Part shown: piece after piece, positions 29,562 to 64,000 of the stretch
How positions within the stretch are numbered: the stretch's first letter is position 1
Layout: every line of letters begins with the position of its first letter
Assembly: GCA_946965045.2 (NCBI GenBank)
Contig: OX337232.1
Span: 3,410,001 to 3,474,000 of the forward strand
Origin: Epithemia pelagica
Lineage: Eukaryota > Protista > Bacillariophyta
Direction of reading: 5' to 3'
Length of the DNA: 64,000 bases
The notes under the pieces: generated by a model
Seen by the model: the letters and a program-made list of their open reading frames with translations, nothing else
Told to the model about the DNA's origin: nothing
Databases searched by the model: none
Program-made: the position numbers and the translations under genes

Positions 29562-29599
29562 CGAAAGCTTCTCGGAAATAAACGATGAGACTGTTAATC

Positions 29600-39394: not shown

Positions 39395-39640
39395 CTATGC
39401 GGTACTATTGCTTGTACTGTTCCCCACAATCGAATTCATCATCTCCTCGACTACTTCCTTGCCCCGATCTTGCCATTCTTGACGATTCTTGAGAGCATAA
39501 TTCAAACATTCGTCACTCGAAACACCAAAGACACCACACTTTTTCAACTTTTTGGCCAGAGGGACAATGTAGAAGTCGAAAAAGCCAATTTCGCCTTCGT
39601 ACCAATTCAAGGATGGATCTGTATCAGCGCTTCCTTCTTG
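39395..39640 (-). pseudogene. Orphan 3' fragment (last-exon part) of another cyclase-PDE paralog
   Basis: ADTDPSLNWYEGEIGFFDFYIV...NSTSNSTA*; cut upstream at the duplication junction (~39637). Confidence 0.85.
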
Positions 39641-44453: not shown

Positions 44454-45137
44454 AGGATATGGTATACAGGCCATTTTAAATGGCCCTTTTCTTTTTCATT
44501 CTGTAGCTCTCTAGCGCTTGACGAAGTCGAGCATGATCTGCTGTTTCTAGAAAACGCTAGAGAACTTTGCTGTGTACACCCTCCGTAGATTACCTATTTG
44601 TTGCTCATGAGACTATCGCATCCGCTTGACTTGGTCAAGCAGTTCGCATCTCCTTTGAATGATGGATGATGGACAGTCTGCTGCGAGATGCGAGACAAAG
44701 CGAATCTTCTATGTGTCTTGGAAAAGTTCAACGAAGCCATTCCTTCTGCTCGATGGGCAAGCCCAAGAACCAAGAAGATAGTCGCTGAAAAATAAAACTA
44801 TTAAGCCCCAAGACCAAAGATATTTCAAATTTTGAACTTATTCCAAATAATGACCGTCTCTCATATTTTCAAAAATCAAAAGAAAAAGAAGTAAATCCAA
44901 AGATTGCAACGAAACACCCTCGATACACGACAGGATGATACATGCGGCACAAATGGTCCAAAACCACAGCTCGACAGAATATCAAACATCAGATGCTTCT
45001 CCTTTTGGATCTGCTGACTCTTTGTCTACCGCGACAGCAAAGACTAGATCGGGAGCAAGTATAGAGCAATGGTATTATATAAATGGATAGTTCTTTCCCC
45101 CACATCTCGTCACCATCTTGCATTAGTCTATTCAACA

Positions 45138-48100
45138 TTAATTGTCTGGTGCTTCTTCGTCCCAGAAGTCTTCTGTCTCAGCAACAGGATTGCTCGCAAG
45201 AGGCGCAGCCTCAACATCTGCTGGTGTTCCGCTATTACTAGTACTGTTCCCCGCAATCGCATTCATCATCTCCTCCACCACTTCCATCCCCCGATCTTGC
45301 CATTCTTGACGATTCTTGAGTGCATAATTCAAACATTCGTCACTCGAAACACCAAACACACCACATTTCTTGAGCTTCTTGGCCAGAGGGATAATGTAGA
45401 AGTCGAAAAAGCCAATTTCGCCTTGGTACCAATTCAAGGACGGATCCGTGTCGGCACGTCCTTCTTGGTAAGCGCGGTAACATTCGTGGAAGAAGTTCTC
45501 ATTCCACTTGCGGTAAATATGCCTGATTTAGTGAATTCGGTATGTCAGAAATGTGCTTCAGTTGATCAGAGGGACAACAAATCAGGCGCAAGGAAAGAAC
45601 TTACCAATGCTGCATAGTGTGGGCCACATCCGAGGCCTGAATCAAGTGCTCAATGACAATGGTTGCCTTTCGGTTGACTGTAGCCAATGGGTCTTCCTCT
45701 CGATATTGATCCGAAAAGGCACTGTCCCATCGAGCATTTCGAAGCACCTTGAGCTCCTTGTCAGCAATATCTGTGGCAAGAACAGCCTGATAACAATCGC
45801 AAACAAATCTCGTTGAGGGTTCCTTCGGTAAAGAGAAGTGCGTCATTTTCCTCTGTTGAGCTTACCTGGACGACAAGTTGACGGAAGCGGGCAAACTCAT
45901 CCTCCGTCGAGTAGATACATGCTCGCAAGTCCTTATATTCATCACTTTGCAACAATTTCCAGGAGAGATCTATGGAGTTCTGTTCGGCCACACTCTTTCC
46001 GCGATAGGCCGAAGCTAAGGATGTGTTTTCTTCGATCAGTACTGTGTTGGGAACGCCAGTATGGTCGACATCATGAATCAATGCCGCAAAGACCAACGAG
46101 AACTGGGTCAAAGGATCGGAGGTGATACCATAAGTGTGATCGTGAAGTGTTGAGTCAATAGTATTTTCGTGTGTTATTTCATCGATGGGAATGTCCGAGT
46201 TCTTTTTGTGAACATACTCAAGGTCCGATGGCATGACAATTCGAGACAAGAGTTTTGTCACGGACATTGTCACATGACAGGCATGCTCAAAACTGTGAAA
46301 GTTGTTGTTCCGGTACAGATTGGCAATGGAGGTGATAAAGGCACGAAGTTGGCTGACGACAGCGTCATTGAGTTCAATTGTAGTGGGATCATCTTGGTTT
46401 CTTGCCGCGTCGGCATCAAATTCTGGCAGCCAAATGATTTCCTTAACCTCGTCCAAACAAATCTTTCCTGGTTGTTGGCTCCACTTGAGACTATTTTGCT
46501 GATGATCCGTTGATAGACCAGTTTGTCCCTGTTTTTCCGCATTGCGTCTTGCTAGAATCTGTTTCAAAAATCGACAGAGTACATCTACCTGCCAATCAAT
46601 CAAACGCATCGTCTTGTTGTCTGTCGAATCCAAAAAGGTGTCATTGACAGAATCCGCAGCCGTCGACAAGTGTGCATTGGATACATCATCTTTAATATGA
46701 AGCCAAAAGGTTTGCATTCGTCCTTTTCCCTTGGCCATGACCATATCCTGACGTGTCTTGACCCAGTGCGCCTTTCCTGCCGCGATCAACAAGTCGGCCG
46801 TTTCCTTGGACATGTGAATGCGATTTCGGCGTCCAGTGCTCTCAATACGGGCCTAATCAATCATCATGGTGTGAGCAAATATAATCAATTTGACTGGAGC
46901 CAAGCAGTCATTGTCATGCCCGATGACTTACCGCTGTGTTGATGGTATCACCAAAGAGTTGGAACCGAGCGCGCTCTCCCCGCAAGACTCCAGCAGTCAC
47001 TGTCCGAATAAAATCATCAACCGAACGAAACCAAGTTAGTCCAGGCTTTAATTCCCAGCCTACAAGAAACGCTCTTACTACGTACCGCTTCCGCTGTGAA
47101 GTCCAATCCGGACACCGAGGTCACCCGTATCAGGTCCCAAGGTCATTTCCAAACGTTTGACCACCTCTTGCGTGGTCAACAAGGCATCCATGGCAAATCG
47201 TGCCATGACAACCGCATGGTCTTTGCGCTTCTCCGGGAGTCCAGCAACCGCCACATAGCAGTCACCCACTGTTTCGACCTTGAAGACTCGTCGTTTCTGT
47301 GCCAGGCGATCGAGTGCGGAAAAGACATTTTCCAACAGGGTAAAGACTTGTGTCGGCTCGCGCATGGACGACCAGGCGGTAAAGTCGGTAATATCGGCAA
47401 ACATGATGGTGGTTTCCAAAAACAAATCGGCAATCGGTGTATCAATTCCTCCTTCATTGTCCATGGTTCCATCATCCAAAAAGTTTTGCAGCTTGCCCAT
47501 GTGCGACGTCATGTGGTGACGATTCTTATTCGACGGGGCTGGCTGATCCAAGAGTCGGTCTCGAATATTGCTGGGAAAGAGCGATGACACGAGTGCGTTG
47601 GATTTGGCCGCATTGGCCACCACCTTGGTATTTCGTTTCCGTTGAAACATATCGTAGGCTAAGAACGCGGCCACCATGGACAAAAAGACTGCTCCCACCA
47701 CCACCGTCAAGTAGATGGGGCTGGAGGTTTTATAATCGTCTTCAAACTCTTGCGAAGGATAAATGTTGACCGTGTAAATACATGCACCGGCTTGCTTGGC
47801 CACATCCAAACCGTTTTCGTAGGTATTGAAATCGGCAGACAGCTTGTAGGAATCGTAATCTGGTTCATGAAGATCTCCACTGCCCATGTAGCGTGCGGTT
47901 TTGCCTTGGATTTCCCATGTCGCCGTATCGTTGCAGGTGTTTTCCAGCACCAAATGAATTCCACGCACATTGTCCGGAAGAATATCGGAAAAGTAGACAT
48001 TCCACCGCAACAGGATGAGCAGTTGGCCCACAAATTTCTTGGAATCATTGTCAAACGAGTTAAAGAGAGGTTGGAAGTAAAATGACTGAGGCTCAAAGCT

Positions 48101-49008
48101 TTCAGACGGGTAAAGCTGATCCATGAATCGTTTGCTGAGAACATCCCCCACCACACCTTCATTGAGCGATCTCATGATATCGTAATCGGATTTCACCCAA
48201 TCAAGTGACAATGTATTCAGATTCATGATGGAAGTGGCAGGAATGGGATCGACTTGCCAAGCGGTAAGAAACGGACCAGTTGCGTTTGGGTCGTACAGGG
48301 CCGGCTGACTGTTTTGAAAGTACCACAAATCGGGCATAAAGGGTGTGCCAGTGTACCAATCGAGATTGGAAAACACATGCATCCTCCAAAGGCTCCGTTC
48401 TTGTTGCTCGACCAAGGGCTGCAACAGAAATCCGACCGAACTGGTCTGTCGACGGAGATTTTGCGCATGAACTTGAAAATCGGGGATGGTCACAAAGGGC
48501 CAGTCGGATTCTCCCTGATTGACCGAAGTTGTGACCTGATCCGCAAAGTCCTGGCAGCTGGTACGAATGGTGGACGCACTAAAGGTTGACGACTCCAGCA
48601 ATGTGGTGGCAAATTGTTTGAACTGAAAATGCAATACAGTATGAGATCATGCATAGAACAGAGAAGAAGGGTCTCGTGGCTCAATCGATTTGAGAAACTT
48701 ACTGAATCTTCAAAGTCATCTTCTTCTTCATTGGAGAGAAATATGTAGGTGGCACCCGTCACAACCCCTCCCACCAACAGCATGGCAATAATGACAACCC
48801 ATCGCCAGTTGCGCACAACTTTGGTTTCTTCACGAATAATCTTCTTGATTTCCTCGACTTCATCTCGAGAATTGGAGGTCGTAGACAAGCGGTTGGTTTC
48901 GTCATCATCATCCTCCTCCTCCATGTCCTCTCCTCCTTCCTGCTGCTCCTCCTTCTTCTTCTTGTCCAGAGGGTTATCCACAAGATACGCTTCACTTGTA
49001 GCTGTCAT
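45138..49008 (-). CDS. Receptor cyclase-phosphodiesterase fusion, copy D (6 exons)
   Basis: Same motifs and intron positions; ATG at MTATSEAY. Confidence 0.88.
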
Positions 49009-49843
49009 GGTTGAAACCAAGTGTGGGATCAAACGCAGAGGTGATTTTTGGTAGCCCGGTTTTGGAATTTATGATAACAATAATACTCATATGTATATAT
49101 TGATGCTCGTATTTCCCCGAAACAACCGGAAAAGGAGAGAAAGGGAATATGTACAATAATTCTCATAACAGCCCCTACTCTCGAAGAAATCGGTCAGTCA
49201 TCGCACCCAACTACTTTCCAAAGGTTTCCTCATAGGATTTGGGGGAAAAAGGCGGAAGTGCGTACGTGACACATGATTGGGTATCTCCAGACGGTCCCCC
49301 GCGGTGCGATGGTTTCGCCTCTCTCTCACTTTTTCCGCTTCTACTCGGATTTATTAATGTGGTGTCGTTCCACGGATCCAAAAGTTCCAGTGAGCTGCCG
49401 AGATTGCTCCTTGTTCCCCGTTCTCCGTTCGTGTTCGTGCAATGTAACTCTCTAACAGAATCACGATCACCCACAATACTCGTAGTAGTAGTCAAGAAAT
49501 TTCTCCTTTTGTTTCTCCAGTAATTCAATCTCCTCTTTATTTCTCGGTTCCAACAAGCGAACCTCTCATGATGAAAAGAAGGTCACGATCGGATCGCGAA
49601 TACCTGCAGACATAAACTGTTGCTTCCCTAGACATCATCCGACCACGACACAAGACAGACCAAGAATCATCTTCCCAATCCAAAAAAAAGAAACCAATTC
49701 AGTAGAGCGACCAGGGACGACAAGACCACACACCTTGAGACCGAACTACCAGATAAGATAGAACACAAGTCGAAAAGAAGAAATTCCCATTGTCTACTAT
49801 AAAATAGCTTAATTGATTGTTCGTTAAAATCCCATTTGAACGC

Positions 49844-52800
49844 TCAGCAAGACCGTCTCTCGGGTGCATCCTCGTCCCAAAAATCTTCAGTATCAACCTC
49901 CGCCACAGGATGGATCTCCATAGGCGATGTCTGACCCTCTACTTGTGTTCCGCTATTACTAGTACTGTTCCCCGCAATCGCATTCATCATTTCCTCAACG
50001 ACTTCCTTGCCCCGATCCTGCCATTCTTGACGATTCTTGAGTGCATAATTCAAACATTCGTCACTCGAAACACCAAACACACCACATTTCTTGAGCTTCT
50101 TGGCCAAGGGAATAATGTAAAAGTCGAAAAAGCCAATTTCGCCCTGATACCAATTCAACGACGGATCCGTGTCGGCCCGTCCTTCTTGGTAAGCACGGTA
50201 ACATTCGTGGAAGAAATTCTCATTCCACTTGCGGTAAATATGCCTGTATAGATGTATCATTGGGTTGGAATGAGAGAGAACGGAGAGGATGGTACGAAGG
50301 CACGGCATGAACGAAGGATGGTAACGTACCAATGCTGCATTGTATGGGCGACATCCGACGCCTGAATCAAGTGCTCAATCACAATGGTCGCCTTTCGGTT
50401 CACTGTAGCCAATGGGTCCTCTGCTTGATGTTGGTCGGCAAAGGCACTGTCCCAACGAGCATTGCGAAGGACCTTGAGCTCCTTGTCAGCAATATCTGTG
50501 GCAAGCACAGCCTGAGAATTACAAACGAGCACAACACGATTGAGGATTTCGATTGACACAGGACAATAAAGGGGGTCTTCCGGCAATTGTTCATCTTATA
50601 CGTACCTGTACGACAAGTTGACGGAAGCGAGCAAACTCATCTTGCGTCGAGTAGATACATGCTCGTAAGTCCTTATATTGATCGCTCTGCAACAGTTTCC
50701 AGGAGAGATCAATGGAGTTTTGTTCGGCCACACTCTTTCCGCGATAGGCTGACGCCAATGGGGCATTTTCTTCGATGAGTACAGTGTTTGGGACTCCTGT
50801 ATGGTCCACATCGTGAATCAATGCCGCAAAGACCAACGAGAACTGTGTCAACGGGTCTGAGGTGATACCATAAGTATGGTCATGAAGGGTCGACTCAATG
50901 GTATGCTCTTGCACCGGCTCGGTCGCAACGCCGCTGTTGCTGTCCCGTTTCCGAACGTATTCCAGATCGGATGGCATGATAATGCGAGACAAGAGTTTGG
51001 TCACGGACATTGTCACATGACAGGCATGTTCAAAACTGTGAAAGTTGTTGTTCCGGTACAGGTTGGCAATTGAGGTGATAAAGGCACGAAGTTGATTGAC
51101 GACCGCGTCGTCTAGTTCGACCATGAGCGGGTCATCTTGGTTTCTTGCCGCGTCGGCATCAAATTCTGGCAGCCAAATGATTTCCTTGACTTCGTCCAAA
51201 CAAATCTTGCCAGGCTGCTGCGTCCACTCCAGATTCTTGTCGAGAGAATCATTCGGTGCATTCGGGTGCACTTGTTTCTCGGCAGTGCGTCGTGCTAGAA
51301 TTTGCTTCAAAAAGCGACTTAGGACATCGACTTGCCAATCAATCAAACGTATCGTCTTGTTGTCTGTCGAATCCAGGAAGGTGTCATTGGCAGAATCCGC
51401 AGCCGTCGACAAGTGTGCATTGGATACATCGTCTTTAATATGAAGCCAAAAGGTTTGCATTTGACCTTTACCCTTGGCCATGACTATATCCTGACGTGCC
51501 TTGACCCAGTGTGACTTTCCGGCAGCGGTCAACAAGTCGGCCGTTTCTTTGGACATGTGAATGCGATTTCGGCGTCCGGTACTTTCAATACGAGCCTGAT
51601 AAAAAAGATGAGAGTTAGAATACTCCAATCGTTTGGATAGGGATACTCTTGCCGAGACAAGATTACACGTACCGTTGTGTTGATGGTATCTCCAAAGAGC
51701 TGGAATCGAGCACGTTCTCCTCGCAGCACACCTGCCGTGACTGTTGACGAAAAAAACAAACACAATATCCAATGAAATGTGAGGAAGGCGTTCCAACAAT
51801 CCCACAACCATGAGAGTGGAACAACAACACTCTGATCTACGTACCACTTCCACTGTGCAAACCAATTCGAACACCGAGGTCACCCGTATCAGGTCCCAAG
51901 GTCATTTCCAAACGTTTGACCACCTCTTGAGTCGTCAACAAGGCATCCATAGCAAATCGTGCCATGACCACGGCATGGTCTTTGCGCTTTTCGGGAAGTC
52001 CAGCAACCGCCACATAGCAATCACCGACCGTCTCGACCTTGAAGACTCGACGTTTCTGGGCGAGACGGTCCAGGGAGCTAAAGACATTTTCCAACAGGGT
52101 AAAGACTTGGGTCGGCTCGCGCATGGACGACCAGGCGGTAAAGTCAGTAATATCGGCAAACATGATGGTCGTTTCCAAAAATAAATCGGCAATCGGTGCG
52201 TTCAGTCCAGCGGCGGCATCTTCGTCCATGATTCCACCATCCAACAAATTTTGCAGTTTGCCCATGTGCGACGTCATTTGATGATTCTTCTTGTTATTGT
52301 TGGCCGGCTGATCCATGAGTCGGTCTCGAATATTACTGGGAAAGAGGGATGAGACGAGAGCATTGGATTTGGCCGCATTGGCCACCACCTTGGTATTGCG
52401 CTTGCGTTGAAACAAATCATAGGCCAAAAAGGCGGCCACCATGGACAAAAAGACTGCTCCGACGACCACCGTCAAGTAAATGGGACTGGAGGACTTGTAA
52501 TCGTCTTCAAATTCTTGAGAGGGATATACGTTGACCGTGTAGATACACGCGCCTGCCTTTCGCGCCGCTTCGACATTGTTGTAGGTATTGAAATCGGCCG
52601 AAAGTTTGTAGGAATCATAGGCCGTGTCATGAAGATCGCCACTGCCAATGTAACGAGCGTCCTTGCCTTCGATTTTCCAGGTGGCCGTATTGTTACAGGT
52701 GTTTTCGAGAACAAGATAAATTCCGCGAACGTCATCGGGAAGAATGTCCGAGAAATACACATTCCATCGCAACAAAATGAGGAGTTCTCCGACAACCTTC

Positions 52801-53779
52801 TTGGATTCTTGATCAAACGAGTCAAAGAGGGGCTGGAAATAAAAGGAATCGGGTTCATACTTGTCCGAAGGGTAGAGCAGATCCACAAATTGCTTACTCA
52901 GTACAGAACCCACCACTCCCTCTCCCAGAGTCTCCATGATATTATGAAGAACGACCGAGTCGCTCAAGGAGAAGGAATTAAAGTTGAGCAGTGGCAAGAC
53001 AGGAAGAGGATCGGCCTGCCAAATGGCTAAAAAGGGCCCCGTCGCGTTGCGGTCGTACATGGTGGGTTGACTGCCATTGCCAAAATACCAGACATCGGGG
53101 AAAAAGGCCGATCCATTGTACCAATCGAGATTGGACATGATGTATTGAGACCATTGCATTCGATCTTGAGGTTCCACAATGGGTAGCAGCATGAATCCAA
53201 CCGCACTCGTTTGGCGCCTCAAGTTTTGCGCATGGACATGAAAATCCGGAATGGTCACCAAGGGCCAATCGGTATCCGACTGTCGCACTGTCGTGGTGAT
53301 TTGATCGGCAAAATCCTTGCAACTGGTACGAATGGTGGAGGCACTAAAGGTGGACGATTCCAAAAGCGTCGTTGCAAATTGATTGAACTGAAAACAACAG
53401 CATATGTTAGACGGTTTGTCAGCAAAATTAGAGAGTCCAAACTGCACCAAACAAGAGAGAGAGAAGAACGTACCGAGTCTTCAAACTCGTCTTCTTCTTC
53501 ATTGGCTAGGAAAATGCACGTGAGGGTTGTGACGGCTCCTCCGACCAACAACATGGCAACAATGACAACCCATCGCCAGTTGCGGACAACTTTGGTTTCT
53601 TCACGAATAATCTTTTTGATTTCTTCCACTTCATCTCGAGAATTGGAGGTGGTGGACAAGCGGTTGGTTTCGTCGTCATCCTCCTCCATGTCATCTTCTT
53701 GTATCACGTTACTGTGCTTGTCGTCCAAAGACTTTTCCTGGAGCGGATATTGTTCCGAAACAACAACTTCCTTCACCAT
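49844..53779 (-). CDS. Receptor cyclase-phosphodiesterase fusion, copy E (6 exons)
   Basis: Same motifs and intron positions; ATG at MVKEVVV. Confidence 0.88.
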
Positions 53780-53910
53780 GGTCGAACGTTCCTTGGGTGT
53801 CAAACAGTGTGAATCTCCTGATTGGATTTTTTTCTTTCTTAGAATGGTCTCGCTTCCGAGAAAATGAACTTGAGGCAAAATTGAAGAAATCATGTTGGGT
53901 GCGTGTCTTC

Positions 53911-54070
53911 AAAGACTACGAGCTACCAGTACCCCAGTACGAGTACGATTACTCGTACGAATCCGAACTGCGAATTACGAATACAAAGTTAAAGACTACG
54001 AGCTACCAATACCCCAGTACGAGTACGATTACTCGTACGAATCCGAACTGCGAATTACGAATACAAAGTT
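53911..54070. repeat. Two tandem 80 bp units (one mismatch) upstream of copy E
   Basis: aaagactacgagctacca...gaatacaaagtt twice; each unit contains the hairpin GTACGAGTA-cgat-TACTCGTAC. Confidence 0.9.
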
Positions 54071-54161
54071 CCCCTACACGAAAATAGGAGTTTGCACGGG
54101 ACCTAAAACTACTCTCTTTCTCCCCATCAATGATCCAGTGATGATGCACATACGTTACCTA

Positions 54162-54195
54162 CAAGCTGAGTTCAGGGAGTATGTTCCTGACGTAG
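54162..54195 (+). repeat. Left TIR
   Basis: CAAGCTGAGTTCAGGGAGTATGTTCCTGACGTAG. Confidence 0.9.
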
Positions 54196-54504
54196 ACCCC
54201 TCGTAGATTTAGTACCATAAAATATAATCCTCAATAGCGTTTGGCCTGACTAGTGAATGAAAGTGTCCGACTCGTGACAACCCAGTGTCTGAATAATAAA
54301 TTTTTTCATTCGTACCGCGATGTGTGACAGCTTCCGAACGCTAGAATTCCGTCGAAAATGATGAAAAAACAGTTGTTGTCTAACGACCATGGTGAAGGGC
54401 CATCCCAACCGCAAACGATGTTGCCGAGCTGCATCCGGACGCTTTAGGGTTTACTTGAAACACCCCCAACGGGGCAACATCGTTTGCGGTTGGCATCATC
54501 CTCA

Positions 54505-57500
54505 ATGACACGATCATCGGACCCAACCGACGCAACACAGTCTCGGATGGAACGAAGTTTATCTACGAAAGAGGTTCTTGACGTCTTCAAGACGCGATGC
54601 TCCCCAACCTCGTTTGGATTCTGCGACAAGTGGATCCAAGACACCAACATTGTAGGATACATGAGCACTTGGTTGCCAGGACTGTCAACAACCAGACTGC
54701 ATCTTGTTTTGTCTAAAGATGTTGTCCTTAAACTCTGTTTCGAAGCTGAGACGTCGGAACCAAACAAGTTTGGCTGGTACCGCCACAAAGTCACAATCCA
54801 AAAGAAAAGATACACATTCTTTGATGTAAGCTCCGACACAACAACACGGCCAGTGATATTCGACGATCACCAAGAATGGCTGGAGGCTGCAGAAACGAAC
54901 ACGATTCGGCGGTCGGGACGAGCGAAGCCAACGAAGCGAAGGAACGAAGAGTCACCAGGGTTGCGTGAAGGCACGCTAAATACATCCAAGCAAGCAAGAA
55001 ACACTTCAACTCCACCAGCAATCAAGAGCACTGCAACGCAGCAACATGGTCAACCGCCACAAATTGGAGACAGCCCTACCGAAATGCAAACGTCACCACC
55101 TCACGACAACACAAATCAGGTGCTTGTTGGAGCAATCCAACATCCTGAATTGGCCACAGACGAAATCGGCCATGACCATCCACAGAGTTTGCCGATTGGT
55201 TTTTCAGTTTTCGAGAGTGAGATGATCCAAGGTCTATCGCAACAAATGGAAAGCGCCTATTTTGATGAGCCAAGGAACCGTAGGCTCTTTGCCGGCAAAT
55301 ACGATTCTCCAGGATCGTCAAAACGAAATCTTGAGCGATGGATAGAAACCCTTGAAAGGGCCATTTCCAACGTGGAGGCACTTCCGAATGTGGTTAACAA
55401 GGGAGACATCTTCCCCCTCAACCAGGAACAGCAACAGAGGGTACTGCTCAAGGCAACGTATTTACAACTTTCTTATAAGATAGCGTTGCTTGATATGCCA
55501 CACGGTCGTACATGGCTGAACTGCATAAGCAAAGCCATTAGCAAAATGGAACAGATTTATGGTGAAAAAGTAAAAAAAACATCCCAAGACCATTGCTCGT
55601 TTTCACAGGTACTTTCGGGAAAACGACAGTTTCCCTCATCCCAACTACCACGTTCATATTGGGAAAGAGCCATCGCCCGTCTTATTCGTTCACATACCTG
55701 AAGCAAAGGTAAAGTTTGAATGCTGGGCAAAGGAAAACCTGAGCACTCTTACAACAGAGTCTGCTCTAATGTACCTGAGGACAACATTGCTTCCGGATAT
55801 GCATACCATGATCGTACAAGAGTGCATGGATACGAATGCAACGCCAGTATCGTACGAGGCCTTCTTGGCATCGATGAAGCTTTCCACCATTTCGCAAAGC
55901 ACAGCGTGGCGATGTATTGCTGCTGCAGGGTTCGTGTTCAAGGAACACACGAAAACATACTTCACTGATCGACACGAAAATGCTGAGAATGTTGCCCACA
56001 GAGCTGCTTTTGTCAAGAAGTACTTTAAGTGGGAAGAGCTGTCGTATCGGTGGGTGCAGCTCCCTACCGAGGATGCAATCAAACTTGAAAACGAAGGGAA
56101 TGCGGGCAAGGAGAAGCTCTTGCCAAACAGCTTTGTATTTGAGTACACTGATGTAACAACAGGCAAGTAGATGTGGGAGTACCATGTTGATGCCTTCCCA
56201 AGCGAATTTGAACGGTACATCAAACCAGAAAGCACAATTCACAATGGAAACTTGTCACACAGGTTTCCCTCCGACCGCAAACCTGTCATCCTCATCGGCC
56301 AGGACGAACCGATCTACAAGCAGTTTTCCTTCTCGTCTAAGGCATGGTACACTAAAGATGGCGCAACTAAAATGCTGCCAAAGGATGATGGACATGGGAT
56401 GATGATCAGCGCTGTTGTAAGCCGATCATGGGGCTTCCTTATGAACGGAAACCCGTTGCTTGCTGCGAGTCTATTTCGGATTAATGAACTCCGTCTACAT
56501 GCGACACACAACAAATACGTCTCTACCGAGGCTGCAGTGAACCTCAATGGTCACACTGCCAAGACTCCAATTACCAATGCCCAACCGTTCACTCGCTTTT
56601 TTGAATACGGAGCAGATAAAGAGGGATATTGGAATTATGAATACATGGCCTTGCAGTTGGAGGATATTGTCGATTGCCTCGTGGTCATGTTCCCCGCCCA
56701 TGACTTTGTCTTTTTGTTCGACCAAAGCAGTGGTCATGGAAAACAACAATCCGATGGGTTAAATGCTCTGAACATGAATAACGACTGGGGAGGAGCTGTT
56801 CCCAGCATGCGGGACACACAAATTATTGATCAAGCTTGCCTTGGCCCGTACAACCATGACGACAAACTACGAGTTGGTGACGTACAACACCTCGTCTATC
56901 AGAAGAACGATCGTGGTCCAGTTGCTAAAAAAGGCCATCGTCTCAATGACGCGCAGCGTGTTGCATCGAAGAATACACACCGAACTGGTAGAAAGAAAAA
57001 GCGCAACCTCACAAAGAAGGAGCTCATGGCAAAACTTGTCCGGGTCATGGGACCTGGAATGCAACGTTCATTTCAATCGAAAAATGCTGGTGAACTACAG
57101 GACCTTTGTAAACGCTCCAACATTGCAACGGTGATTGAAGATGATGTGATCGAGGAAGGCTGGATGAATGCTGCAAAAGGGCTCTTTCAAGTGTTATGGG
57201 AGCGGGGGTGGATAGACCCTAACAACATGATCAAGTACGTCAAGACAACCAGAGATGCATTGTTGGAAGCGGATAAGAAGACTGTGAAAGAAGCCTATCA
57301 GGCAGACTACAAAAAGTACTCTATGGTTCATCTGATGAGCGAATGCTCCGATTTCAAGAACGAAAAATCTGCAATGGAGAAGCTGGCGGAAGACTTGTCT
57401 GAACGACATCGTTGCAGGATCGAGATTCTCGTATCGACCAAGTATCACTGTGAAATGGCCGGTGAGGGGATCGAGTATGGCTGGGGTTACTCAAAAAAAG

Positions 57501-57814
57501 TCTTTCGTGCTTTCTCACTGAATGAGAAGAAAGACAAAGCTGCCTTTTTACGATGTTTGACAGCGAGCCTGAAGAAAACAACACCCGAAATCATGCGGAA
57601 AATGTCAGCAAAGGCACGTCGCTATATGCTCGCGTACTTGTTATACGATCAAAATTCCAACAACAGAGACTATGCAGCTGCGGGCCTCTCGTATGCCGAA
57701 ATTGAAAAGATGTCAAAAGCAATCAAGTGTCACCGATCCGCCTTCGACCAAGATCATGGCTTCATCTCACGTCTCTGGAGAGAAACGCAAGGATCTGGTG
57801 CAGTAGAAACCTGA
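54505..57814 (+). pseudogene. DDE transposase (~1100 aa when repaired), IS630/Tc1/mariner-like, with one frameshift and one nonsense codon
   Basis: Motifs ILIGQDE, FLFDQSSGH, GLFQVLWERG and KYHCEMAGEGIEYGWG. One extra A in the A8 run 55572-55579 hides an open frame (HPKTIARFHRYFRENDSFPHPN...); in-frame TAG at 56168-56170. The start position is uncertain. Confidence 0.8.
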
Positions 57815-58224
57815 TCTAATCTCCATTTATCATCAAAATGCATGTAACTTAACTATTTATAACAGCAATCCATTTTATTGAATGTATTTCTTGTCAGTCA
57901 TTGGTATCAATGATCACTTCCGTGTTGCGTGCTCGTGTTGCGTGTTGGCTTATCAGTTTGTAAGTACCTCGAAAATGTGAGAGAGCGAGAAAATGGACGA
58001 TTTTCGGAGCAGACCTCGCGCGAAACACGCCTCCCTCTCCGAAAACGCGCACGCATTGCAAAACTGGCACGCAAATCCTTAAGTAACTCAGCCCACATAC
58101 CAAAACTTCACCGTTTTTTAGTATGTGAGCTCAAGATTTTTTTTGGAATGTGAGCTGAGGGCTGAGGAGAATGCTGCGTTTCGTGTTTCTTGTGTTTCGT
58201 GTTTCGAGTTTTTGCGTTACGACC

Positions 58225-60228
58225 ATGGGGAAACCAAGCCCTAAGAAACAGTATTCAAAAGCAGGCGCTCAAAAACGAGACAGCATGAGTGACAAAGGGA
58301 ATCTTGACGCTCTTATACTTGCAATAGATGCAGCGGAAGAGCAGTCAGCCAAAGCAGCAGCGGCGCCCGAAGCAGCAGCAGCCGCAGCACCCGAAGCAGC
58401 AGCAACAGACGAAGCGACAACAACAAAGCACCATCGGTTTCTTTCGGATCAAGACTTTGCCGAAGTGAAGGATAAAAAGCTTGTAGATGTTCGGCGTGGC
58501 CATCCAGAGAAGGACCACAGCAAACAGTATTCGGAAACTCAAATGCGGCAGCTCCTCACCGATACGCGCACAGCGGACTACAAGAAAGGCGTCGAGGAAG
58601 TGGAGAAACTCCCTTCTCGTTCTGGACGGGATCCAATCAGGACTTTCACCGAAGGCCTCAAGACGCTCTCCAAGATCAAAGACAGTGCTGTACTTGCCTG
58701 TGCTATGGGAGAGTATGTCTCACGGAAGATTTCGGCCACTTTTTCGGTCCAAGAAGCTCCAATTCGGAAGCCCGGTTCTGGCTTGCAAAAGGGGAAGATT
58801 GTGCCACTTTCGGGTGGAATGGGTCTCCCTGTCAAGAAGAACAGAAAACATACCTTCCCGATTGGCAAGCATGTCGGTTACACATTTGCGAACAATCCGG
58901 TAGTCAAGATCTACCTTGGAAAAGTGCTTCTGTTTGAGGTGAAGGAGTCAAAACTCCCAGGCGCCGGGTTTGGCGTTTTTGCAGTTCGGACAATCAAAGA
59001 TGGTAAAGTGATTGGCGCGTACACGGGAAACGACATCACGTCTCGGACAAATGTACCCAACGAGTACGCGATTCAGTTCGGACGTGACAATCGAAGGCTT
59101 CAAGCAGACAACGACGATCACTTCGGCATGGGACTGCACTTAATCAACGACCACCGACACCATCGGTACGGTACAGACAATCCACCGGATGAATCAGATG
59201 ATCATTACAACGTGAGAATCATGCCGAATCTTCTAGTCAAGGCAATCAAGCCGATCGAAAAGGGCGACGAGCTGTCTTTGTTTTATAACCTTTCGGACGA
59301 ATCGCCGACGTCCTCCGAACAGGTTATCCGACCGTCGACGAAAGGTGACGACGACGAAGACGAGGGAAAGAAACGCGGTCGACCCAGTGATGAAAATGAA
59401 GACGACGGGAAAAAAACAAAGAAGGCTTTCGCTACTTCTTCTACTACTGTTTTCCGCCCAGTTGCTGCTGTTGCTCGTCCTCCTGCTCTTCCTTCTCCGC
59501 CTCCTCCGCAAGACGTTTCTGGGCACTACAATTTGCCCCCTCAGCTGCCACCACATCATCCTCCGCCGTATCATCCTCATCCTCCGCCGTATTATGATCC
59601 ACCGCATTGTCATCATCCTCCGCCATATTATGATCCACCGCATTGTCATCATCCTCCGCCATATTATGATCCACCGCATCGTCATCATCCTCCTTCGTAT
59701 CATCCTCCGCCGCATCATCATCATCATCATCCTCCTTCGTATCATCATCATCCTCCTTCGTATCATCCTCCGCCGCATCATCCTCCGCCGCCGCATCATC
59801 CTCAGCCGCATTACCATGGGCATCCCCCGTCCTATAATCAACCCCATTATGGAGGAGGTTACCAGGGGGCTCTGCCTTTATCGCAGCAACAACAACGCAC
59901 GACCCAGCCGGTCGTAGGTTCACCGGAGCGTCCGAGCAATCCCGTCCCACCTGCAGCACAAGCTCAACCCGCCACTCGACCCGATCGCTCCCTTTCTGGA
60001 ATGTTAGTACGAGTAATTGCCTTGCCAGAATTTTCAGAAAGTGACACCACGGATGACAATTCTTTTGATCAGGAGATGTCGGATGACAATTCTTTTGCTC
60101 CGGAGATGAATGCGATCGACGAGTTAATGCAGGAGGGTGAATGGCAAAAGCAACAGATGTTGCAAAATAGAGAATTGCGCAAGAAGTATTTCAAATCGCT
60201 ATACGATAGTGAAAACAAAATCTTTTGA
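58225..60228 (+). CDS. SET-domain protein with His/Pro-rich linker (transposon cargo)
   Basis: EVKESKLPGAGFGVFA...IGAYTG...LHLIND...IEKGDELSLFY matches SET motifs; no Cys-rich post-SET region. Confidence 0.8.
   Translation: MGKPSPKKQYSKAGAQKRDSMSDKGNLDALILAIDAAEEQSAKAAAAPEAAAAAAPEAAATDEATTTKHHRFLSDQDFAEVKDKKLVDVRRGHPEKDHSKQYSETQMRQLLTDTRTADYKKGVEEVEKLPSRSGRDPIRTFTEGLKTLSKIKDSAVLACAMGEYVSRKISATFSVQEAPIRKPGSGLQKGKIVPLSGGMGLPVKKNRKHTFPIGKHVGYTFANNPVVKIYLGKVLLFEVKESKLPGAGFGVFAVRTIKDGKVIGAYTGNDITSRTNVPNEYAIQFGRDNRRLQADNDDHFGMGLHLINDHRHHRYGTDNPPDESDDHYNVRIMPNLLVKAIKPIEKGDELSLFYNLSDESPTSSEQVIRPSTKGDDDEDEGKKRGRPSDENEDDGKKTKKAFATSSTTVFRPVAAVARPPALPSPPPPQDVSGHYNLPPQLPPHHPPPYHPHPPPYYDPPHCHHPPPYYDPPHCHHPPPYYDPPHRHHPPSYHPPPHHHHHHPPSYHHHPPSYHPPPHHPPPPHHPQPHYHGHPPSYNQPHYGGGYQGALPLSQQQQRTTQPVVGSPERPSNPVPPAAQAQPATRPDRSLSGMLVRVIALPEFSESDTTDDNSFDQEMSDDNSFAPEMNAIDELMQEGEWQKQQMLQNRELRKKYFKSLYDSENKIF
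59578..59685 (+). repeat. 3 x 36 bp coding tandem repeat (HPPPYYDPPH[C/R]H) within a longer His/Pro tract
   Basis: Directly visible tandem units. Confidence 0.9.
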
Positions 60229-61134
60229 GGCTGTTTTTTTACAACGCCGCCAGACCTCCTCCAGTTGTTGGAGCAAGTGTGGAAAGGCAAACACCTGAAC
60301 AGTAAAGGAAAGGGCACCTTTTTCAAATCTGTTCAAGACTACACCCCAAATTTGTTGATGGCGATGATGGAACATGATGGCATGGTGGCCAACACTCGGT
60401 ACTTCAACGACTGCGACCCAGAACAGGTCCAAAAAGTCACGACAGATTTCAAGCAGTTTCTTGCCTCAGCTCTCCATGGAATGAAGTACGCAAAAGATGA
60501 ATCATTTGCGGACCAAATGAGCATTCACCTTTCGCTTATGAAGACCACTCGGGAAGAAGTGCAAGAACCTCACATCGACTTCTTGTTCCCGGCCGTAACA
60601 GGAAACATGTCCGAGAGTCCAAAAACGCCATCCGGGAAGCAACAAAAAAGCAAAAGGATGACTCGGCAATCGTTCTCAGATCTGCCACTCCGGGAACGCA
60701 TCCCCTTCATTGTTTTTATGCCCCTGACGGAGGAGGGTATGTCCATTGAATTGTGGAGCTACCGTGCTGAGAAGCACGAGAACTATACGCATGAGTTGGG
60801 TAACGTGGTACAAATCCCGTACGGCAAGTTTCTCCTCGTTCGAGGAGATACTGTCCATGCTGGTGGCTTTAAGACTGGAGAGCTGGGAAATCCACGTGCA
60901 CATTTTTACGTGTACCAAGGAAAAGATGGGACCATCCACGATCCCATGCCAAAGAACAGCTACAATCTACCTTCTGGACAAAGGCTTTCAGAGTGCTACT
61001 TCCATCAAAAGGACATTCCTGGTGATCGCCCTAGTGGGATCATTCGGGTTAACCTTACGCTCGATGGCCATCGCTTTGCCGTCCAGGGTGATTATCGTAG
61101 AGTGCTTCTGGCTACGAAAAAACCTGGTATTTAG
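60229..61134 (+). CDS. 2OG-Fe(II) dioxygenase-like domain (transposon cargo), in frame with the SET ORF
   Basis: QEPHIDF (HxD)...FMPLT...RGDTVHAGG...NPRAHFY gives the HxD...H...R double-stranded beta-helix signature. No stop between 60229 and the annotated TTG at 60265. Confidence 0.65.
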   Translation, partial: GCFFTTPPDLLQLLEQVWKGKHLNSKGKGTFFKSVQDYTPNLLMAMMEHDGMVANTRYFNDCDPEQVQKVTTDFKQFLASALHGMKYAKDESFADQMSIHLSLMKTTREEVQEPHIDFLFPAVTGNMSESPKTPSGKQQKSKRMTRQSFSDLPLRERIPFIVFMPLTEEGMSIELWSYRAEKHENYTHELGNVVQIPYGKFLLVRGDTVHAGGFKTGELGNPRAHFYVYQGKDGTIHDPMPKNSYNLPSGQRLSECYFHQKDIPGDRPSGIIRVNLTLDGHRFAVQGDYRRVLLATKKPGI

Positions 61135-61642
61135 ATCTTGAACAAAGAAGCCGATCAAACTTAGATCTTTCCTTGTGGTGAAAGTGTGTTATTGTTGAGA
61201 AAGAATACCATGGTACGTTGAGTTGCAGTATGACATTAAGATTTACTAGTTTATTCCTTCATATTATACTTTAGTACATTGTCGTGTTGTGTGGAAAACG
61301 CAAAATATGAGATAAGAATCATAGCTCGTCTGGGACCAATCACAAACTCCCTCGTACATCCATACGAGGCGTGCCCGCAAACCGGGACCCAACTACCGAC
61401 ACTGGCAAGCTGGATAACGACGATGACGATGATGATGAAGAGGACAAACAGAATGAGCGATGATAGCTACAACAAGGACGACTACAATACAACGACGACA
61501 ATGATAGCCACGACAATGACGAGGACTTGGACGACGACAATGATGATAATCACAACAAGAATGACTGTAGAAGCACTACCATGATGACAAATCGATTCAT
61601 ATTTAGTGATTAAGGATACCTAAAACGTCCATCAGTAGATAT

Positions 61643-62549
61643 CTAGTATGCCTCGTCCTCATGATCCAAGTAATCGGGACCAAAAAGCCCGTTTTGCTGC
61701 GTACCGATGAAGTCTTCTTGGGTCTCGAGAAATCCATCATCGGCATACGAATCAATGGATGTCCGGTATGCACGGGAAGGATTGCTAAAGAACAAAGGAG
61801 GAGACGACGGGATGTTTTCTCCCAATACCAGCGACTCATTCAAGGTCTGGCGAGGGTCTGTCGCTCCACTTTCCTTCACCTGTTCCTCAGCAATCCGACG
61901 CTGGAAAGCATGCTTCTGGGAGGGGGTCAGTGCAAAAGCTCGAGACGCCACCTTCGGGGAAGAAGTTACTTTCTTCGGGGTCACATAAGACTCTGGAGTC
62001 TTGTTCTCGACGTCGTCCTCCTTCTTGATCTCCTTCTCGGGCTTGCTGTCGGGCTTGTTGTCGGGCTTGCTGTTGGGTTTGGTGTCTGTGGCAGCAGAGG
62101 GCGCGTCGTGAGAAAGGGAGACTCAAAACCAACAATGAACAATCAAACTTACCTTCTTTGCCGACAGCCTCGATCGCAAGGAGCTCTGCCGCGATATCCG
62201 ACAGGTTAGCGCATTCGACGTCCTTGTTGCTGACGAAGAACACTGGGATACCATCTTCATCCCCAATGGTGAGTTGCCACTGTTTTGCGCGCTCGTGCCA
62301 CGACAAAGGACCCTCAAGGTTGAAGGTCACATGCTTCTTTGTCGAAGCGGGAGACTTCGTCGTCGTCGTCTTCTTCTTCTTCGACGTTTTGTTGTCCACG
62401 GTCGTCTTTGTCTTCATTTTCTTGTTTGCCTTGTTTCCCTTGCTTCCCTTGTCGGAGGGAAATGCGGTTGTGGAGGGAGCTGCGGCGGAGTCCTCCTGCT
62501 CCTTCTTCGCAGACTCAGCTCGTTTGGTAGCACTACGCGTCTGGCCCAT
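61643..62549 (-). CDS. Orphan cargo protein (279 aa), two exons 62549-62153 and 62085-61643
   Basis: GTAAG donor at 62152 and CAG acceptor at 62086 join two ORF-track frames. Lys-rich N-terminus, small central domain, acidic C-terminus. Confidence 0.55.
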
Positions 62550-62720
62550 CGTTGGAAAGTGAGAACACAATAGGGATTCGTTCGTTTGATTGTTGTGTTT
62601 GTTTGTTTGATTGTTGCCCGCTCTCCGTTCTTGTGTCATCTAGGGAATCCCCCCGCGCTCATTCGTGAACAATATCGGCGCGCGCCACAAAATCAACTTG
62701 CAGCATGAAGCAACTTCCGA

Positions 62721-63293
62721 ATGACCCGCCGTGCAATGGAACAATCAAACAGAGACGACAGGAAGAGGCAAGGAAGAAGAAACAAGATGACCAACATGAG
62801 GACGAAGTTCGAGTTCAACGAAGAGGATGGCCGTGAGGGTGGTGCTGGTCTCCCGTTCAAGTCGTGCTTTTATGCCAGCGATGTTTGCGCGCTCATCGGG
62901 CCCATGTCGAGAAACAAGGACACTGGCCACAACATCGTCGACCGTGGCCATCTGCTTGTGCAGCGGGAGCTTGCAACCGACTACCTACGGATTGCAGTCT
63001 TTGACCGGGATGCAACAAGCGAGCATGAGGAACCAGCGTTGGTTGTTCCAGTTGGGTTCATTGCTCTGTCGCACCTGGACCAGGTCTCTGGAAAGACGAG
63101 CAAGAACGGACTTCCCATGGGACGCATCCGCCTCTACAAACGCTGCTCCATCAACCCTAAAGCCTGCATGGAACCCCAGGTCGTTACAATCTACATGGGC
63201 AGCAAGGATATGGATCGCTTCAACATTTCGCTTGGTGCGATGATGCTCAAGCACCCGCTTCAAAATCTCTTCTTTAATCATCAACAAGCCTAG
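62721..63293 (+). CDS. Orphan cargo protein (190 aa), divergent from the previous gene
   Basis: Open frame with mixed alpha/beta-like composition; no family recognised. Confidence 0.5.
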   Translation: MTRRAMEQSNRDDRKRQGRRNKMTNMRTKFEFNEEDGREGGAGLPFKSCFYASDVCALIGPMSRNKDTGHNIVDRGHLLVQRELATDYLRIAVFDRDATSEHEEPALVVPVGFIALSHLDQVSGKTSKNGLPMGRIRLYKRCSINPKACMEPQVVTIYMGSKDMDRFNISLGAMMLKHPLQNLFFNHQQA

Positions 63294-63887
63294 ATAGTGA
63301 ACAATGTAGCAGCGTTTTATGATTATCATTTGAGTAGGATCTTCATTCTCTATGAATACGATCTAATTCTATAGTTGTGTTACGTTTACCGTACAATACA
63401 TTGCGTTCAGGTACGGCTGTGTGAGTCACAACAAAGAAAAGAACATCAATCTTTGTTGTGAACGACGCAACTTCTAGTCTAAGTTCCATATATCTAACGA
63501 GAGGAATATCAATTTTTGACGTGAACAACGCTACAAGTGTTCATAGTCTTTGTTCTATCTTCTATCATTCGATTCTACAATAGAGGTGCATTGGTTGCAC
63601 CAAGTTTTGCCGTGAGTCGCCGTAGTAAATCGCGCGGCGACCACCTTCAACTAGATAAAACGACACCTACAAAACGAATGCAGCGCCGACATCGTTCTCC
63701 ATGCTCAACCCATGAATGGAGAAGAGGTTCAGAGCATGGGATCATGGAGCCGTCTCCTATTTGGCAAGAGATTGGTCAAAAGGACCGTTCACCATGGTCA
63801 ATTTTTGGTAGAACGGTAGAGGCATAAATAGAAGGGCTATATTAAGGGGATGGCTCGCGCGGATTACGTAGATTTCCTACTGGAGCG

Positions 63888-63921
63888 CTACGTCAGGAAC
63901 ATTCTGTCTGAACTCAGCTTG
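63888..63921 (-). repeat. Right TIR
   Basis: Reverse complement reads CAAGCTGAGTTCAGACAGAATGTTCCTGACGTAG. Confidence 0.9.
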
Positions 63922-64000
63922 TATGCTGGGTCCCAGGAACGGACGCTTGGAAGTGGTGTGAATCGCTCCCGAGAAATTCATTCAAGCTTTTTGTTTTTTG

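Follow-up and report, generated by a model that had tools for sequence, protein, structure and literature searches.

The window analysed here is the whole 64,000-nucleotide stretch of DNA, from Epithemia pelagica, and it contains a large DNA transposon and a related element with the following features.

20510-31365, +: related non-autonomous element with the same terminal 14-mer (one mismatch at the right) and TA on both sides
54160-54161, no strand: left TA target-site duplication, outside the left terminal inverted repeat (TIR)
54162-63921: DNA transposon, whole copy of ~9.7 kb, TIR-bounded and TA-flanked
54162-54195, +: left TIR, 34 nt, with weaker pairing to about 54206
54547-57814, +: transposase gene, broken here; 1088 aa in its intact form
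56303-56308, +: transposase motif DE(S)
56720-56737, +: transposase motif DQSSGH
57467-57487, +: transposase motif GIEYGWG
58225-61134, +: SET-2OG oxygenase fusion gene, split here by TGA; 949-967 aa in intact copies
58960-58983, +: SET-domain motif GAGFGVFA
58966-59289, +: PR/SET-like domain (Pfam SET, ORF residues 266-373)
59140-59154, +: SET-domain motif LINDH
59266-59289, +: SET-domain motif DELSLFYN
59400-60050, +: Pro/His/Tyr-rich low-complexity linker with 18/36-nt repeats (family D12)
60229-61134, +: 2OG-Fe(II) oxygenase-fold domain
60571-60579, +: oxygenase motif HID
60850-60867, +: oxygenase motif TVHAGG
60889-60903, +: oxygenase motif NPRAH
61887-62639, -: ORF of 250 aa whose N-terminus is rich in Lys and Thr; uninterrupted in the window and in eight young copies
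62721-63293, +: 185/190-aa accessory gene, fold unassigned
63888-63921, -: right TIR
63922-63923, no strand: right TA target-site duplication

The 34-bp TIRs and flanking TA described in an earlier note on this DNA are present, the TIRs being identical at 31 of 34 terminal positions. When positions 53000-64000 were searched, the pairing of 54160-54206 with 63877-63923 was the longest inverted repeat (47 nt, 83%). The terminal 14-mer occurred four times in the window against 0.66 expected, a count reached in none of 100 shuffles. The element at 20510-31365 also shares subterminal homology of about 320 bp on the left and 106 bp on the right, and a Copia LTR retrotransposon with identical LTRs (22180-22479 and 29600-29899) is nested in it. 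Eight further full-length copies (L003-L010) were found on different contigs of the same assembly (ERZ21939226), surrounded by unrelated flanking genes. Each lies between the same TIRs and TA, has the terminus of the left TIR of the window copy, and shows a TA duplication at every junction; their identity to one another is 99.94-99.99%. The SET and 2OG cargo thus recurs between TIRs at no fewer than eight unrelated loci, and the genome holds about 20 copies. A contig of run X1, from the same organism, joins 54161 directly to 63924 onward and provides an empty site with a single TA.

The window copy is decayed by one frameshift and two in-frame stops. In the transposase gene, the frameshift comes from one surplus A within an A-run at 55572, and one of the stops is the TAG at 56168-56170, where intact copies have CAG. 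Both lesions were bridged by homologue alignments and were also seen against the intact copy L004; in most reads, position 56168 is C and the surplus A is missing. In the fusion gene, TGA at 60226-60228 replaces the CGA of intact copies. These results demonstrate that the copy at 54162-63921 is older, has been inactivated and is polymorphic for insertion, and that it belongs to a family of 9.7-kb DNA transposons, one that transposes by cut-and-paste into TA dinucleotides and has been active very recently.

The earlier note listed a SET domain and a 2OG-Fe(II) dioxygenase domain inside the TIRs. Both domains exist, in one gene that the stop codon divides here. The SET domain was recovered above the Pfam cut-off (27.1 bits; cut-off 22.4), an assignment that Atlas features also backed, and its motifs are invariant across four lineages. 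Its best solved relatives were PRDM/MECOM PR domains; no relatives of the TE-type SET were found outside the E. pelagica genome. The domain is PR-like, with IND-H in place of the canonical NHxC motif, which is absent, and catalysis by it is therefore uncertain. For the oxygenase, Pfam gave no match and no TET/JBP, JmjC or AlkB signal. The claim is nevertheless borne out by an AlphaFold model (pLDDT 80), to which 2OG oxygenases aligned at Z 10-11, and by the H, D and H of HxD...H, which are invariant in 44 homologues. The structural matches were PhyH-like small-molecule oxygenases and prolyl hydroxylases (SnoN, AndA, AsqJ, P4H and PHD2). By neither fold nor sequence does the domain resemble TET/JBP or JmjC; therefore, a role as the element's own eraser of 5mC or histone methylation, as proposed earlier, is not indicated. 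One homologue, P0142, is surrounded by the same host genes in each of three independent metagenome contigs, and further homologues are MMETSP transcripts. Since the family also comprises ordinary host genes in other protists, the oxygenase domain has been captured.

In the literature searched, no paper was found that describes such an element in diatoms, and to this extent the family is undescribed. The novelty is smaller than first stated, however, because transposons of oomycetes are known to carry SET accessory genes, and those of red algae to carry both SET and 2OG ones. SET genes are reported in Phytophthora HarbingerS, MuDR and proto-Helentron elements (PMC12730594 citing Repbase Reports; PMC4067079). 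These too are stramenopile transposons with a SET-domain gene as accessory cargo, but they belong to other transposase superfamilies, whereas the present element, probably hosted by a diatom, has SET fused to a 2OG oxygenase and two further conserved genes. Giant Plavaka elements of the red alga Bostrychia moritziana carry accessory genes PAG1-3, a cassette that is long conserved and shifts between TE lineages (bioRxiv 10.1101/2025.02.11.637652). The likeness is one of content: a large transposon with a SET protein, a 2OG-dependent oxygenase and a function-unassigned gene. Those CACTA/Plavaka elements, however, encode two genes, SET-N6-adenine DNA methylase and oxygenase-ParB-like fusions, whereas SET and oxygenase form one polypeptide in a mariner-like element here, where neither a methylase nor a ParB domain was detected. 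Fungal KDZ/Plavaka, hAT, IS3EU and PHIS transposons likewise carry a 2OG-Fe(II) dioxygenase thought to target epigenetic marks, but theirs are TET/JBP dioxygenases (PMC12730594), which the present one is not by Pfam and fold ranking. The VANC anti-silencing protein of Arabidopsis VANDAL (MuDR) elements (PMC10398659) is similar in concept only, as an element-encoded factor that alters the element's own epigenetic state, a role that is putative here; VANC binds DNA sequence-specifically rather than acting as an enzyme, and has no homology to the diatom element.

The explanation that we favor, with a probability of about 80%, combines the mobile family described above with a SET-2OG cargo that would act on chromatin. 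The fusion protein may work in the nucleus, joining a lysine methyltransferase to an oxygenase of the hydroxylase or demethylase type. It would act on chromatin or chromatin-associated proteins to the benefit of the element, and the most plausible way is that it counteracts or redirects silencing by the host; the small conserved proteins may be targeting or partner subunits. A chromatin or anti-silencing role of the cargo is plausible. A point against this explanation is that the structures closest to the oxygenase are those of small-molecule and prolyl hydroxylases, not those of demethylases that act on nucleic acids or histones. It is possible, although rather unlikely, that the fusion enzyme modifies a small molecule, the transposase itself, or a host protein that serves in repair or silencing, in which case the label of a "histone/5mC writer-eraser" would be wrong. 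The PhyH-like and prolyl hydroxylase neighbors of the oxygenase and the lack of a TET/JBP, JmjC or AlkB signal in Pfam are consistent with such a target, and non-histone proteins are substrates of many SET and PR domains. However, the SET domain is nearest to the PRDM/MECOM histone methyltransferase class, and the SET/2OG genes of other transposons have been read by their authors as putatively chromatin-directed.

In intact copies, four genes follow one another in a constant order: the transposase, the SET-linker-2OG fusion, the 250-aa gene on the opposite strand and the 185-aa gene. Lineage L019 keeps this layout with a transposase that is 56% identical, and L011 has the SET gene and the 185-aa gene with a transposase that is 44% identical; the four-gene layout is old. 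The two orphan genes noted earlier both exist. The 185-aa gene is identical in sequence in the eight young copies and strongly conserved beyond them (62% identity with L019, 48-51% with L011; dN/dS 0.18-0.26). Its product has a weak Atlas lead to a C2-like domain, and no relatives were found outside the E. pelagica genome. Conservation of the 250-aa ORF (dN/dS 0.51) is confined to its C-terminal half of ~150 aa, in L019 (37% identity, E 2e-17).

At least 15 contigs have the fusion gene, with 14 variants of its sequence among them. Its dN/dS of 0.27-0.68, mostly 0.55-0.68, indicates moderate constraint; it is broken in the window copy, L019 and L018; and one RNA-like run (X4) gave almost no signal on the element. 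All three observations count against our explanation and, together with the host-gene homologues of the oxygenase, would suit a captured host gene of no benefit to the element that persists through recent bursts only. This reading is unlikely, as the SET gene has been retained where transposases are only 44-56% identical, its motifs are unchanged in four lineages, and none of the young copies has a disrupted reading frame. Moreover, the window and L004 differ by 16 indels in the fusion coding sequence, every one a multiple of 3 in length and most of them within the Pro/His/Tyr-rich linker. Near-identical parts of the fusion gene are common to lineages with different backbones; therefore, the gene moves between lineages by recombination and is retained, and segments are exchanged among lineages in this way.

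The family moves by means of its transposase, by which the 34-nt TIRs are presumably bound. No Pfam model matches this protein, and a PDB profile search with a 51-sequence profile gave no sequence match, so that a sequence-level link to Tc1/mariner was not found in Pfam or PDB. At least 174 homologues were found in diatoms and metagenomes; in Nitzschia inconspicua, a 2.73-kb relative has TA flanks too. Across 51 homologues, residues D586, E587, D725, H730 and E969-E976 show little or no variation, and D586, D725 and E976 or a neighboring Glu would form the active site. For the transposase, dN/dS was 0.23-0.38. Despite the missing Pfam match, the DDE transposase claim was upheld by the predicted fold, which is nearest to Mos1, Metnase and Sleeping Beauty. 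In a structure search that did not depend on Foldseek, Z was 14.5 for Metnase, 14.0 and 13.7 for Mos1 and 12.6 for Sleeping Beauty, with retroviral integrases as the next class at 8.8 or less. Superposition on the model at 2.8-2.9 A covered nearly the whole mariner catalytic domain (about 194 of 201 residues), and AFDB clusters named Tc1-like DDE matched at E 1e-21 to 1e-8. Metnase (primate SETMAR) also combines a SET domain with a mariner transposase, but as a host gene fusion through Hsmar1 domestication, whereas the SET gene here stands apart from the transposase, as cargo of a mobile element.

The element thus resembles Tc1/mariner (IS630-Tc1-mariner; Mos1, Sleeping Beauty) in TA duplication, short TIRs and nearest catalytic-domain fold. 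It differs in size (9.7 kb and four genes against 1-3 kb and one gene), in transposase length (1088 aa) and in the spacing of the second D and E, about 250 residues against 34-41, a point against our explanation. This spacing reflects a conserved insertion of ~230-250 residues ahead of the last catalytic residue. The insertion, a protein length of 800-1090 aa and the missing sequence matches could mark a DDE superfamily outside Tc1/mariner, sharing the RNase-H core and convergent in its TA targets. We consider this improbable, given the gap between Z 12.6-14.5 and 8.8 or less for all other DDE enzymes, the extent of the superposition, the TA duplicated at every junction, and DE(S), D-x4-H and IE-xx-W, which we take to resemble Tc1 signatures. 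The catalytic domain of the 1088-aa transposase, as modeled, has the Tc1/mariner fold with a large inserted domain. With the TIRs, the TA and the eight further copies, this fold establishes the large TA-targeting mariner-type transposon of the earlier note as genuine.

Least likely of all is that the SET domain lays repressive marks on the element's own copies or donor sites, limiting dosage and host damage instead of helping the element to escape silencing. This reading is favored by the near-silence of some 20 copies in the RNA-like run and by a resemblance to PRDM3/16-type domains, which make H3K9me1, but eight copies that are nearly identical point to a very recent burst, which makes efficient self-silencing unlikely. 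Under the chromatin-acting explanation, this diatom transposon may tamper with the silencing marks of its host.

The longest inverted repeat between 53000 and 64000 of the window paired 54160-54206 with 63877-63923 (47 nt, 83%). The terminal inverted repeats (TIRs) flanked by TA that had been proposed from the sequence were borne out: counted inward from the TA lying directly outside the ends at 54162 and 63921 (54160-61 and 63922-23), the TIRs matched at 31 of 34 nt. The terminal 14-mer occurred four times in the window against an expectation of 0.66, and four or more occurrences were seen in 0 of 100 shuffles. TA was present at all 12 left and all 10 right junctions examined, which included the window elements and further copies. 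The further copies were located by exact-protein look-ups, which led to the assembly ENA ERZ21939226. Eight young full-length copies (L003-L010; 9721-9726 bp) lay on different contigs in unrelated gene surroundings, and each carried the same TIR at its start and end with TA flanking both sides. Pairwise identity among them was 99.94-99.99%, indicating that the burst was very recent. At least 15 contigs carried the SET-2OG fusion protein, which occurred in 14 sequence variants. The earlier note had asked whether the SET and 2OG cargo recurs between TIRs at unrelated loci, and L003-L010 provide this recurrence; when tested, TIR-bounded copies with the cargo existed and the cargo genes were not single-copy syntenic host orthologues.

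Contigs of public sequencing runs of the same organism were aligned onto window 53000-58999. One contig of run X1 matched the left flank as far as 54161, and its next 30 letters were identical to 63924-63953; this arrangement is the empty site that had been sought, holding one TA. Therefore, the window insertion is polymorphic. Contigs of runs X2 and X3 likewise ended at 54161, and their flank carried an 80-nt length variant, indicating an empty site on a different haplotype.

Intact copies encode a transposase of 1088 aa, and at least 174 homologues were found for the 547-aa ORF of the window. No Pfam family was matched at E values up to 1, including the Tc1/mariner models DDE_1, DDE_3, and Transposase_1, and the precomputed Pfam annotation was empty in 119 of 120 homologues. 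Single-sequence and 51-sequence profile searches of the PDB also retrieved no solved relative. When the whole 1088-aa AlphaFold model (pLDDT 76, core mostly >90; a predicted structure) was compared with the PDB by Foldseek, only weak Mos1 matches were obtained (E value, 0.09); therefore, a Foldseek-independent search and AlphaFold-DB clusters were needed to place the fold. The former, a wide VIA-align search with the predicted model, ranked Metnase (Z 14.5), Mos1 (14.0 and 13.7), and Sleeping Beauty (12.6) highest, with 194 of 201 residues aligned to Metnase at 2.8 Å. Integrases were the next class (Z ≤8.8), and Tn5, piggyBac, and P element also ranked below the mariner-type matches. AlphaFold-DB clusters annotated as Tc1-like DDE matched the model with E values of 1e-21 to 1e-8.

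The conserved residues of the transposase were D586-E587, D725 with H730, and E969/E973/E976. Judging from conservation and secondary structure, the catalytic triad would consist of D586, D725, and E976 or a neighbouring Glu. The local motifs DES, D-x4-H, and IE-xx-W may be similar to Tc1 signatures. The canonical spacing from the second D to the third D/E in Tc1/mariner enzymes is 34-41 residues, whereas D725 and E969-E976 are separated by 244-251 residues, a segment kept across the transposase family. The designation of the element as mariner-type thus stood in its broad sense, with TA duplication, TIRs, and an RNase-H-fold DDE/D catalytic domain (the last from predicted structures only), but not for the 34-41-residue spacing or a sequence match to the profile models. 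The transposase is best described, on its predicted fold, as a deep and atypical branch of mariner-type enzymes. ISL2EU/PHIS elements were considered for their 2-bp duplication and were rejected, as there was no Pfam match and the fold was mariner-like; a passage of PMC4482050 describes PHIS transposases as Harbinger-like. These results demonstrate that the element moves by TA-targeted cut-and-paste with a mariner-fold DDE enzyme and was recently active.

The window copy itself is decayed and shares 95.2% overall identity with the young copies. In alignments with homologous transposases, the match runs on across a frame change near 55576 and a stop at 56168-70, and alignment with the intact copy L004 revealed an extra A in an A-run at 55572 and TAG in place of CAG at 56168. 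At 60226, TGA in the window copy replaces CGA in L004 and splits an otherwise single SET-oxygenase ORF. According to the reads, most genomic copies have C at 56168 and lack the extra base at 55572; this check covered 53000-58999 and thus both transposase lesions, with 60226 beyond that stretch, and the contig depth ratios give only a rough hint of copy number. Both premature stops are C-to-T changes relative to the intact copies (CAG to TAG and CGA to TGA). The stop at 60226 lies at a CpG and would fit deamination of a methylated cytosine, although two sites prove nothing.

The SET domain noted inside the TIRs was confirmed by Pfam, by its PR-domain relatives, and by Atlas. With the cut-off at 22.4 bits, SET (PF00856) scored 27.1 in the window ORF and 26.7 in L004, and Atlas SET clusters scored 0.91-0.92. 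The closest solved relatives were the PR domains of MECOM, PRDM16, and PRDM12. The motifs GxG (AGFG) and ELxLxYN were invariant in four element lineages, and the middle motif was (I/S)ND(H/P) where NHxC is expected, as in PR-type domains. When the compact SET protein of L011, a diverged lineage of the family, was used as the query, all hits came from the same genome. Two metagenome scans, one for the TE-type SET domain and one for the 185-aa protein, likewise retrieved no relatives; each used two short peptide patterns, which makes the negative result weak evidence.

An exhaustive search with the C-terminal 300 aa of the fusion retrieved 229 homologues. None of 44 oxygenase homologues had a Pfam family match, and nothing significant was found among solved structures by sequence (best profile match in the PDB, FtmOx1; E value, 0.2). 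In the same 44 homologues, H102, D104, and H195 were invariant and R208 nearly so, making these residues a putative iron-binding triad and a putative 2OG-binding basic residue. All structural matches of the AlphaFold model (pLDDT 80) were cupins or 2OG-Fe(II) oxygenases, the best being PhyH-like enzymes and prolyl hydroxylases (Z 10-11, 150-175 residues aligned); the Foldseek E values were 2e-5 to 1e-4, and the TM scores were low (0.25-0.39). The C-terminal domain is therefore predicted to be an oxygenase by its double-stranded beta-helix fold and by its HxD...H triad, which upholds the original 2OG-Fe(II) assignment without a curated family match. Neither a TET/JBP (KDZ-type) nor a JmjC-type oxygenase was supported; there was no Pfam match to either, and both were absent from the top 50 of the two structural rankings.

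The oxygenase homologue P0142 had the same host gene neighbourhood on three independent environmental contigs, and other homologues were MMETSP transcripts, indicating that the domain comes from an ordinary protist gene family. The element thus captured a host-type oxygenase. A word-based search with the full fusion protein returned only its own cluster, because the low-complexity linker dominated the matches. At L018:7200-8700 (ctg1287l), a third diverged pair of SET and oxygenase was located that lacks the long linker, and it was considered as a host source of SET-2OG. Its SET part was decayed, with stops and lost motifs, and its oxygenase was an intact 228-aa ORF with 45% identity. No family TIRs or transposase were found near this pair, which may once have been a host copy or may be the relic of an old element.

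Diverged lineages of the family in the same genome were analyzed, together with relatives from Nitzschia inconspicua (GCA_019154785.2), and TA flanks were found on all of them. L019 (8656-18492; 9.84 kb) has TIRs starting with CTAGCTGG and a transposase with 56% identity, and carries four genes in the order of the main family, with a frameshifted SET-2OG gene. L011 (6304-14669; 8.37 kb) has TIRs starting with CAAGCTGG and a transposase with 44% identity; its cargo comprises a homologue of the 185-aa protein and a compact 316-aa SET protein that lacks the oxygenase. The two orphan genes of the earlier note are thus recurrent, the 185-aa gene in L011 and both in L019, and the four-gene architecture is conserved. 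In N. inconspicua, three 100% identical 2.73-kb copies (L012-L014) were found on three large scaffolds, with a 799-aa transposase, no cargo, 22-nt perfect TIRs, and TA at both ends, suggesting that this relative was also recently active.

The dN/dS values were 0.23-0.38 for the transposase, 0.18-0.26 for the 185-aa gene, 0.51 for the C-terminal half of the 250-aa gene, and 0.27-0.68 for SET-2OG, for which decayed copies entered part of the comparisons. Therefore, the 185-aa gene is as constrained as the transposase, and the fusion gene is retained under weaker constraint. Among close copies, the 250-aa ORF had six non-synonymous and no synonymous changes (dN/dS 0.78); the reading of this ORF as unconstrained was rejected, since its C-terminal half is conserved in L019. 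All 16 indels between the fusion CDS of the window copy and that of L004 had lengths divisible by three. Many fall in a repeat with a unit length also divisible by three, but the four located in the oxygenase domain preserve the frame as well.

Identity between the window copy and the young copies was uneven: the transposase core and right third were 99-99.8% identical, the initial 800 bp 86-93%, and the region of the linker and oxygenase 78-89%. L001, another, decayed copy, showed the reverse pattern, its oxygenase part being 99.5-99.8% identical and its transposase 74-91%. In the young master copy, the backbone resembles that of the window copy, and the 3' half of SET-2OG (linker and oxygenase) resembles that of L001. 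Between L004 and L019, dS was 0.89 for the transposase and 0.12-0.23 for SET-2OG. These mosaic identities and the contrast in dS indicate that diverged lineages of the family swap segments by recombination and that the cargo module spreads among backbones.

Further features of the window are given below.

Features neighbouring or related to the 9.7-kb element (window coordinates)
20510-31365: non-autonomous element of the family, with the terminal 14-mer at 20510 (+) and 31365 (-), TA on both sides, and an L001-type TIR
22180-22479 and 29600-29899: 100% identical LTRs of a Copia element nested in 20510-31365, with a 1900-aa ORF containing RVT_2
51840-53450, minus strand: ORF with an adenylate/guanylate cyclase catalytic domain (Pfam E value, 5e-25)
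53388-53473, minus strand: 86-nt GT..AG intron, from X4 contigs over the last gene-unit copy

The non-autonomous element is split by the Copia insertion, and the subterminal sequence that it shares with the main element measures approximately 320 bp on the left and 106 bp on the right. It has none of the main element's genes, and its approximately 3.1 kb of own sequence contains no recognisable gene. Of the CAAG...CTTG termini in this stretch, at least the pair at its ends is part of the TIR element and not of an LTR. Five copies of a gene unit of 4-5.7 kb with 65-96% identity occupy window 11500-15400 and 34400-53700; four of the five are in tandem, in an array ending just left of the 9.7-kb element. 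At 32118-32325 and 32632-32839, two arrays of 8-nt repeats (units like GACAAGAC and GACAAGCG) stand in opposite orientation approximately 300 nt apart and together form a long imperfect palindrome. Elsewhere in the assembly, L002:1-18625 (the start of ctg1231l) is a tandem array with a period of 5689 bp and at least three units, each with a left TIR, a 551-aa ORF that joins transposase residues 1-282 to 587-820, and a 723-aa WW-domain gene. The array yielded no right TIR and looks like a truncated element amplified along with a neighbouring gene. Of the words sampled from window 52500-56500, 5-16% were present in biofilm and marine-sediment metagenomes (X5-X11); the organism or its close relatives therefore seem to inhabit benthic biofilms.

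Run X4 behaved as RNA: it had 39 Mb of contigs, and the flanking cyclase gene showed high depth and a joint reading GT..AG on its minus strand. On the element, depth was essentially zero except for one 252-nt contig of depth 2 in the SET region. Taking X4 as RNA from this behaviour, the family may be largely silent under the conditions of that run.

No description of this family in diatoms was found in the literature searched. The concept has oomycete, fungal, and red-algal precedents. A passage of PMC12730594 cites Phytophthora elements of the HarbingerS and MuDR types that carry SET genes and places TET/JBP genes in several fungal DNA transposon superfamilies, and a Phytophthora proto-Helentron with a SET gene has also been reported (PMC4067079). 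The closest precedent of all is the giant Plavaka elements of red algae, in which PAG2 combines an N6-adenine (6mA) DNA methylase with SET, PAG3 combines a ParB-like domain with a 2OG oxygenase, and the PAG cassette moves among TE lineages (bioRxiv 10.1101/2025.02.11.637652). This cassette was compared by its described domains: neither a methylase nor a ParB domain was detected among the proteins of the diatom element, whose transposase is mariner-like rather than Plavaka/CACTA. The diatom element differs from all precedents in its mariner-like superfamily, its single SET-2OG polypeptide, its two extra conserved genes, and its host group.

We hold the structural description of the element and its genes with a probability of about 0.95. 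The fusion may have a nuclear, chromatin-directed role, and the 250-aa and 185-aa proteins could act as partners or in targeting. A chromatin-directed function of the fusion that benefits the element is a serious possibility, to which we give slightly less than an even chance. A more detailed mechanism is conceivable and rather unlikely as a whole: SET-2OG would be an element-encoded methyl-lysine writer joined to an oxidative eraser or hydroxylase, the 185-aa and 250-aa proteins would recruit it to the element's own copies, and the resulting reset of host heterochromatin at these copies would have allowed the recent burst.

If this mechanism is true, SET-2OG would be an enzymatic anti-silencing system on a mariner-like transposon in a diatom. 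Transposons with their own epigenetic enzymes are rare and show most clearly how mobile DNA and host silencing compete in an arms race. The present family is an unusually clean case, with young, near-identical, and apparently intact copies, older decayed ones, cargo-poor and non-autonomous relatives in the same genome, and an insertion polymorphism, which jointly serve as natural controls for the question of whether the cargo alters chromatin state or transposition rate. The family also widens the range of the Tc1/mariner fold, to a giant transposase that carries an inserted domain and to elements with several genes, and it shows modular cargo exchange between transposon lineages. Viewed alongside the examples from oomycetes and red algae, it suggests that algal and stramenopile transposons have repeatedly arrived at SET and 2OG accessory genes as a solution.
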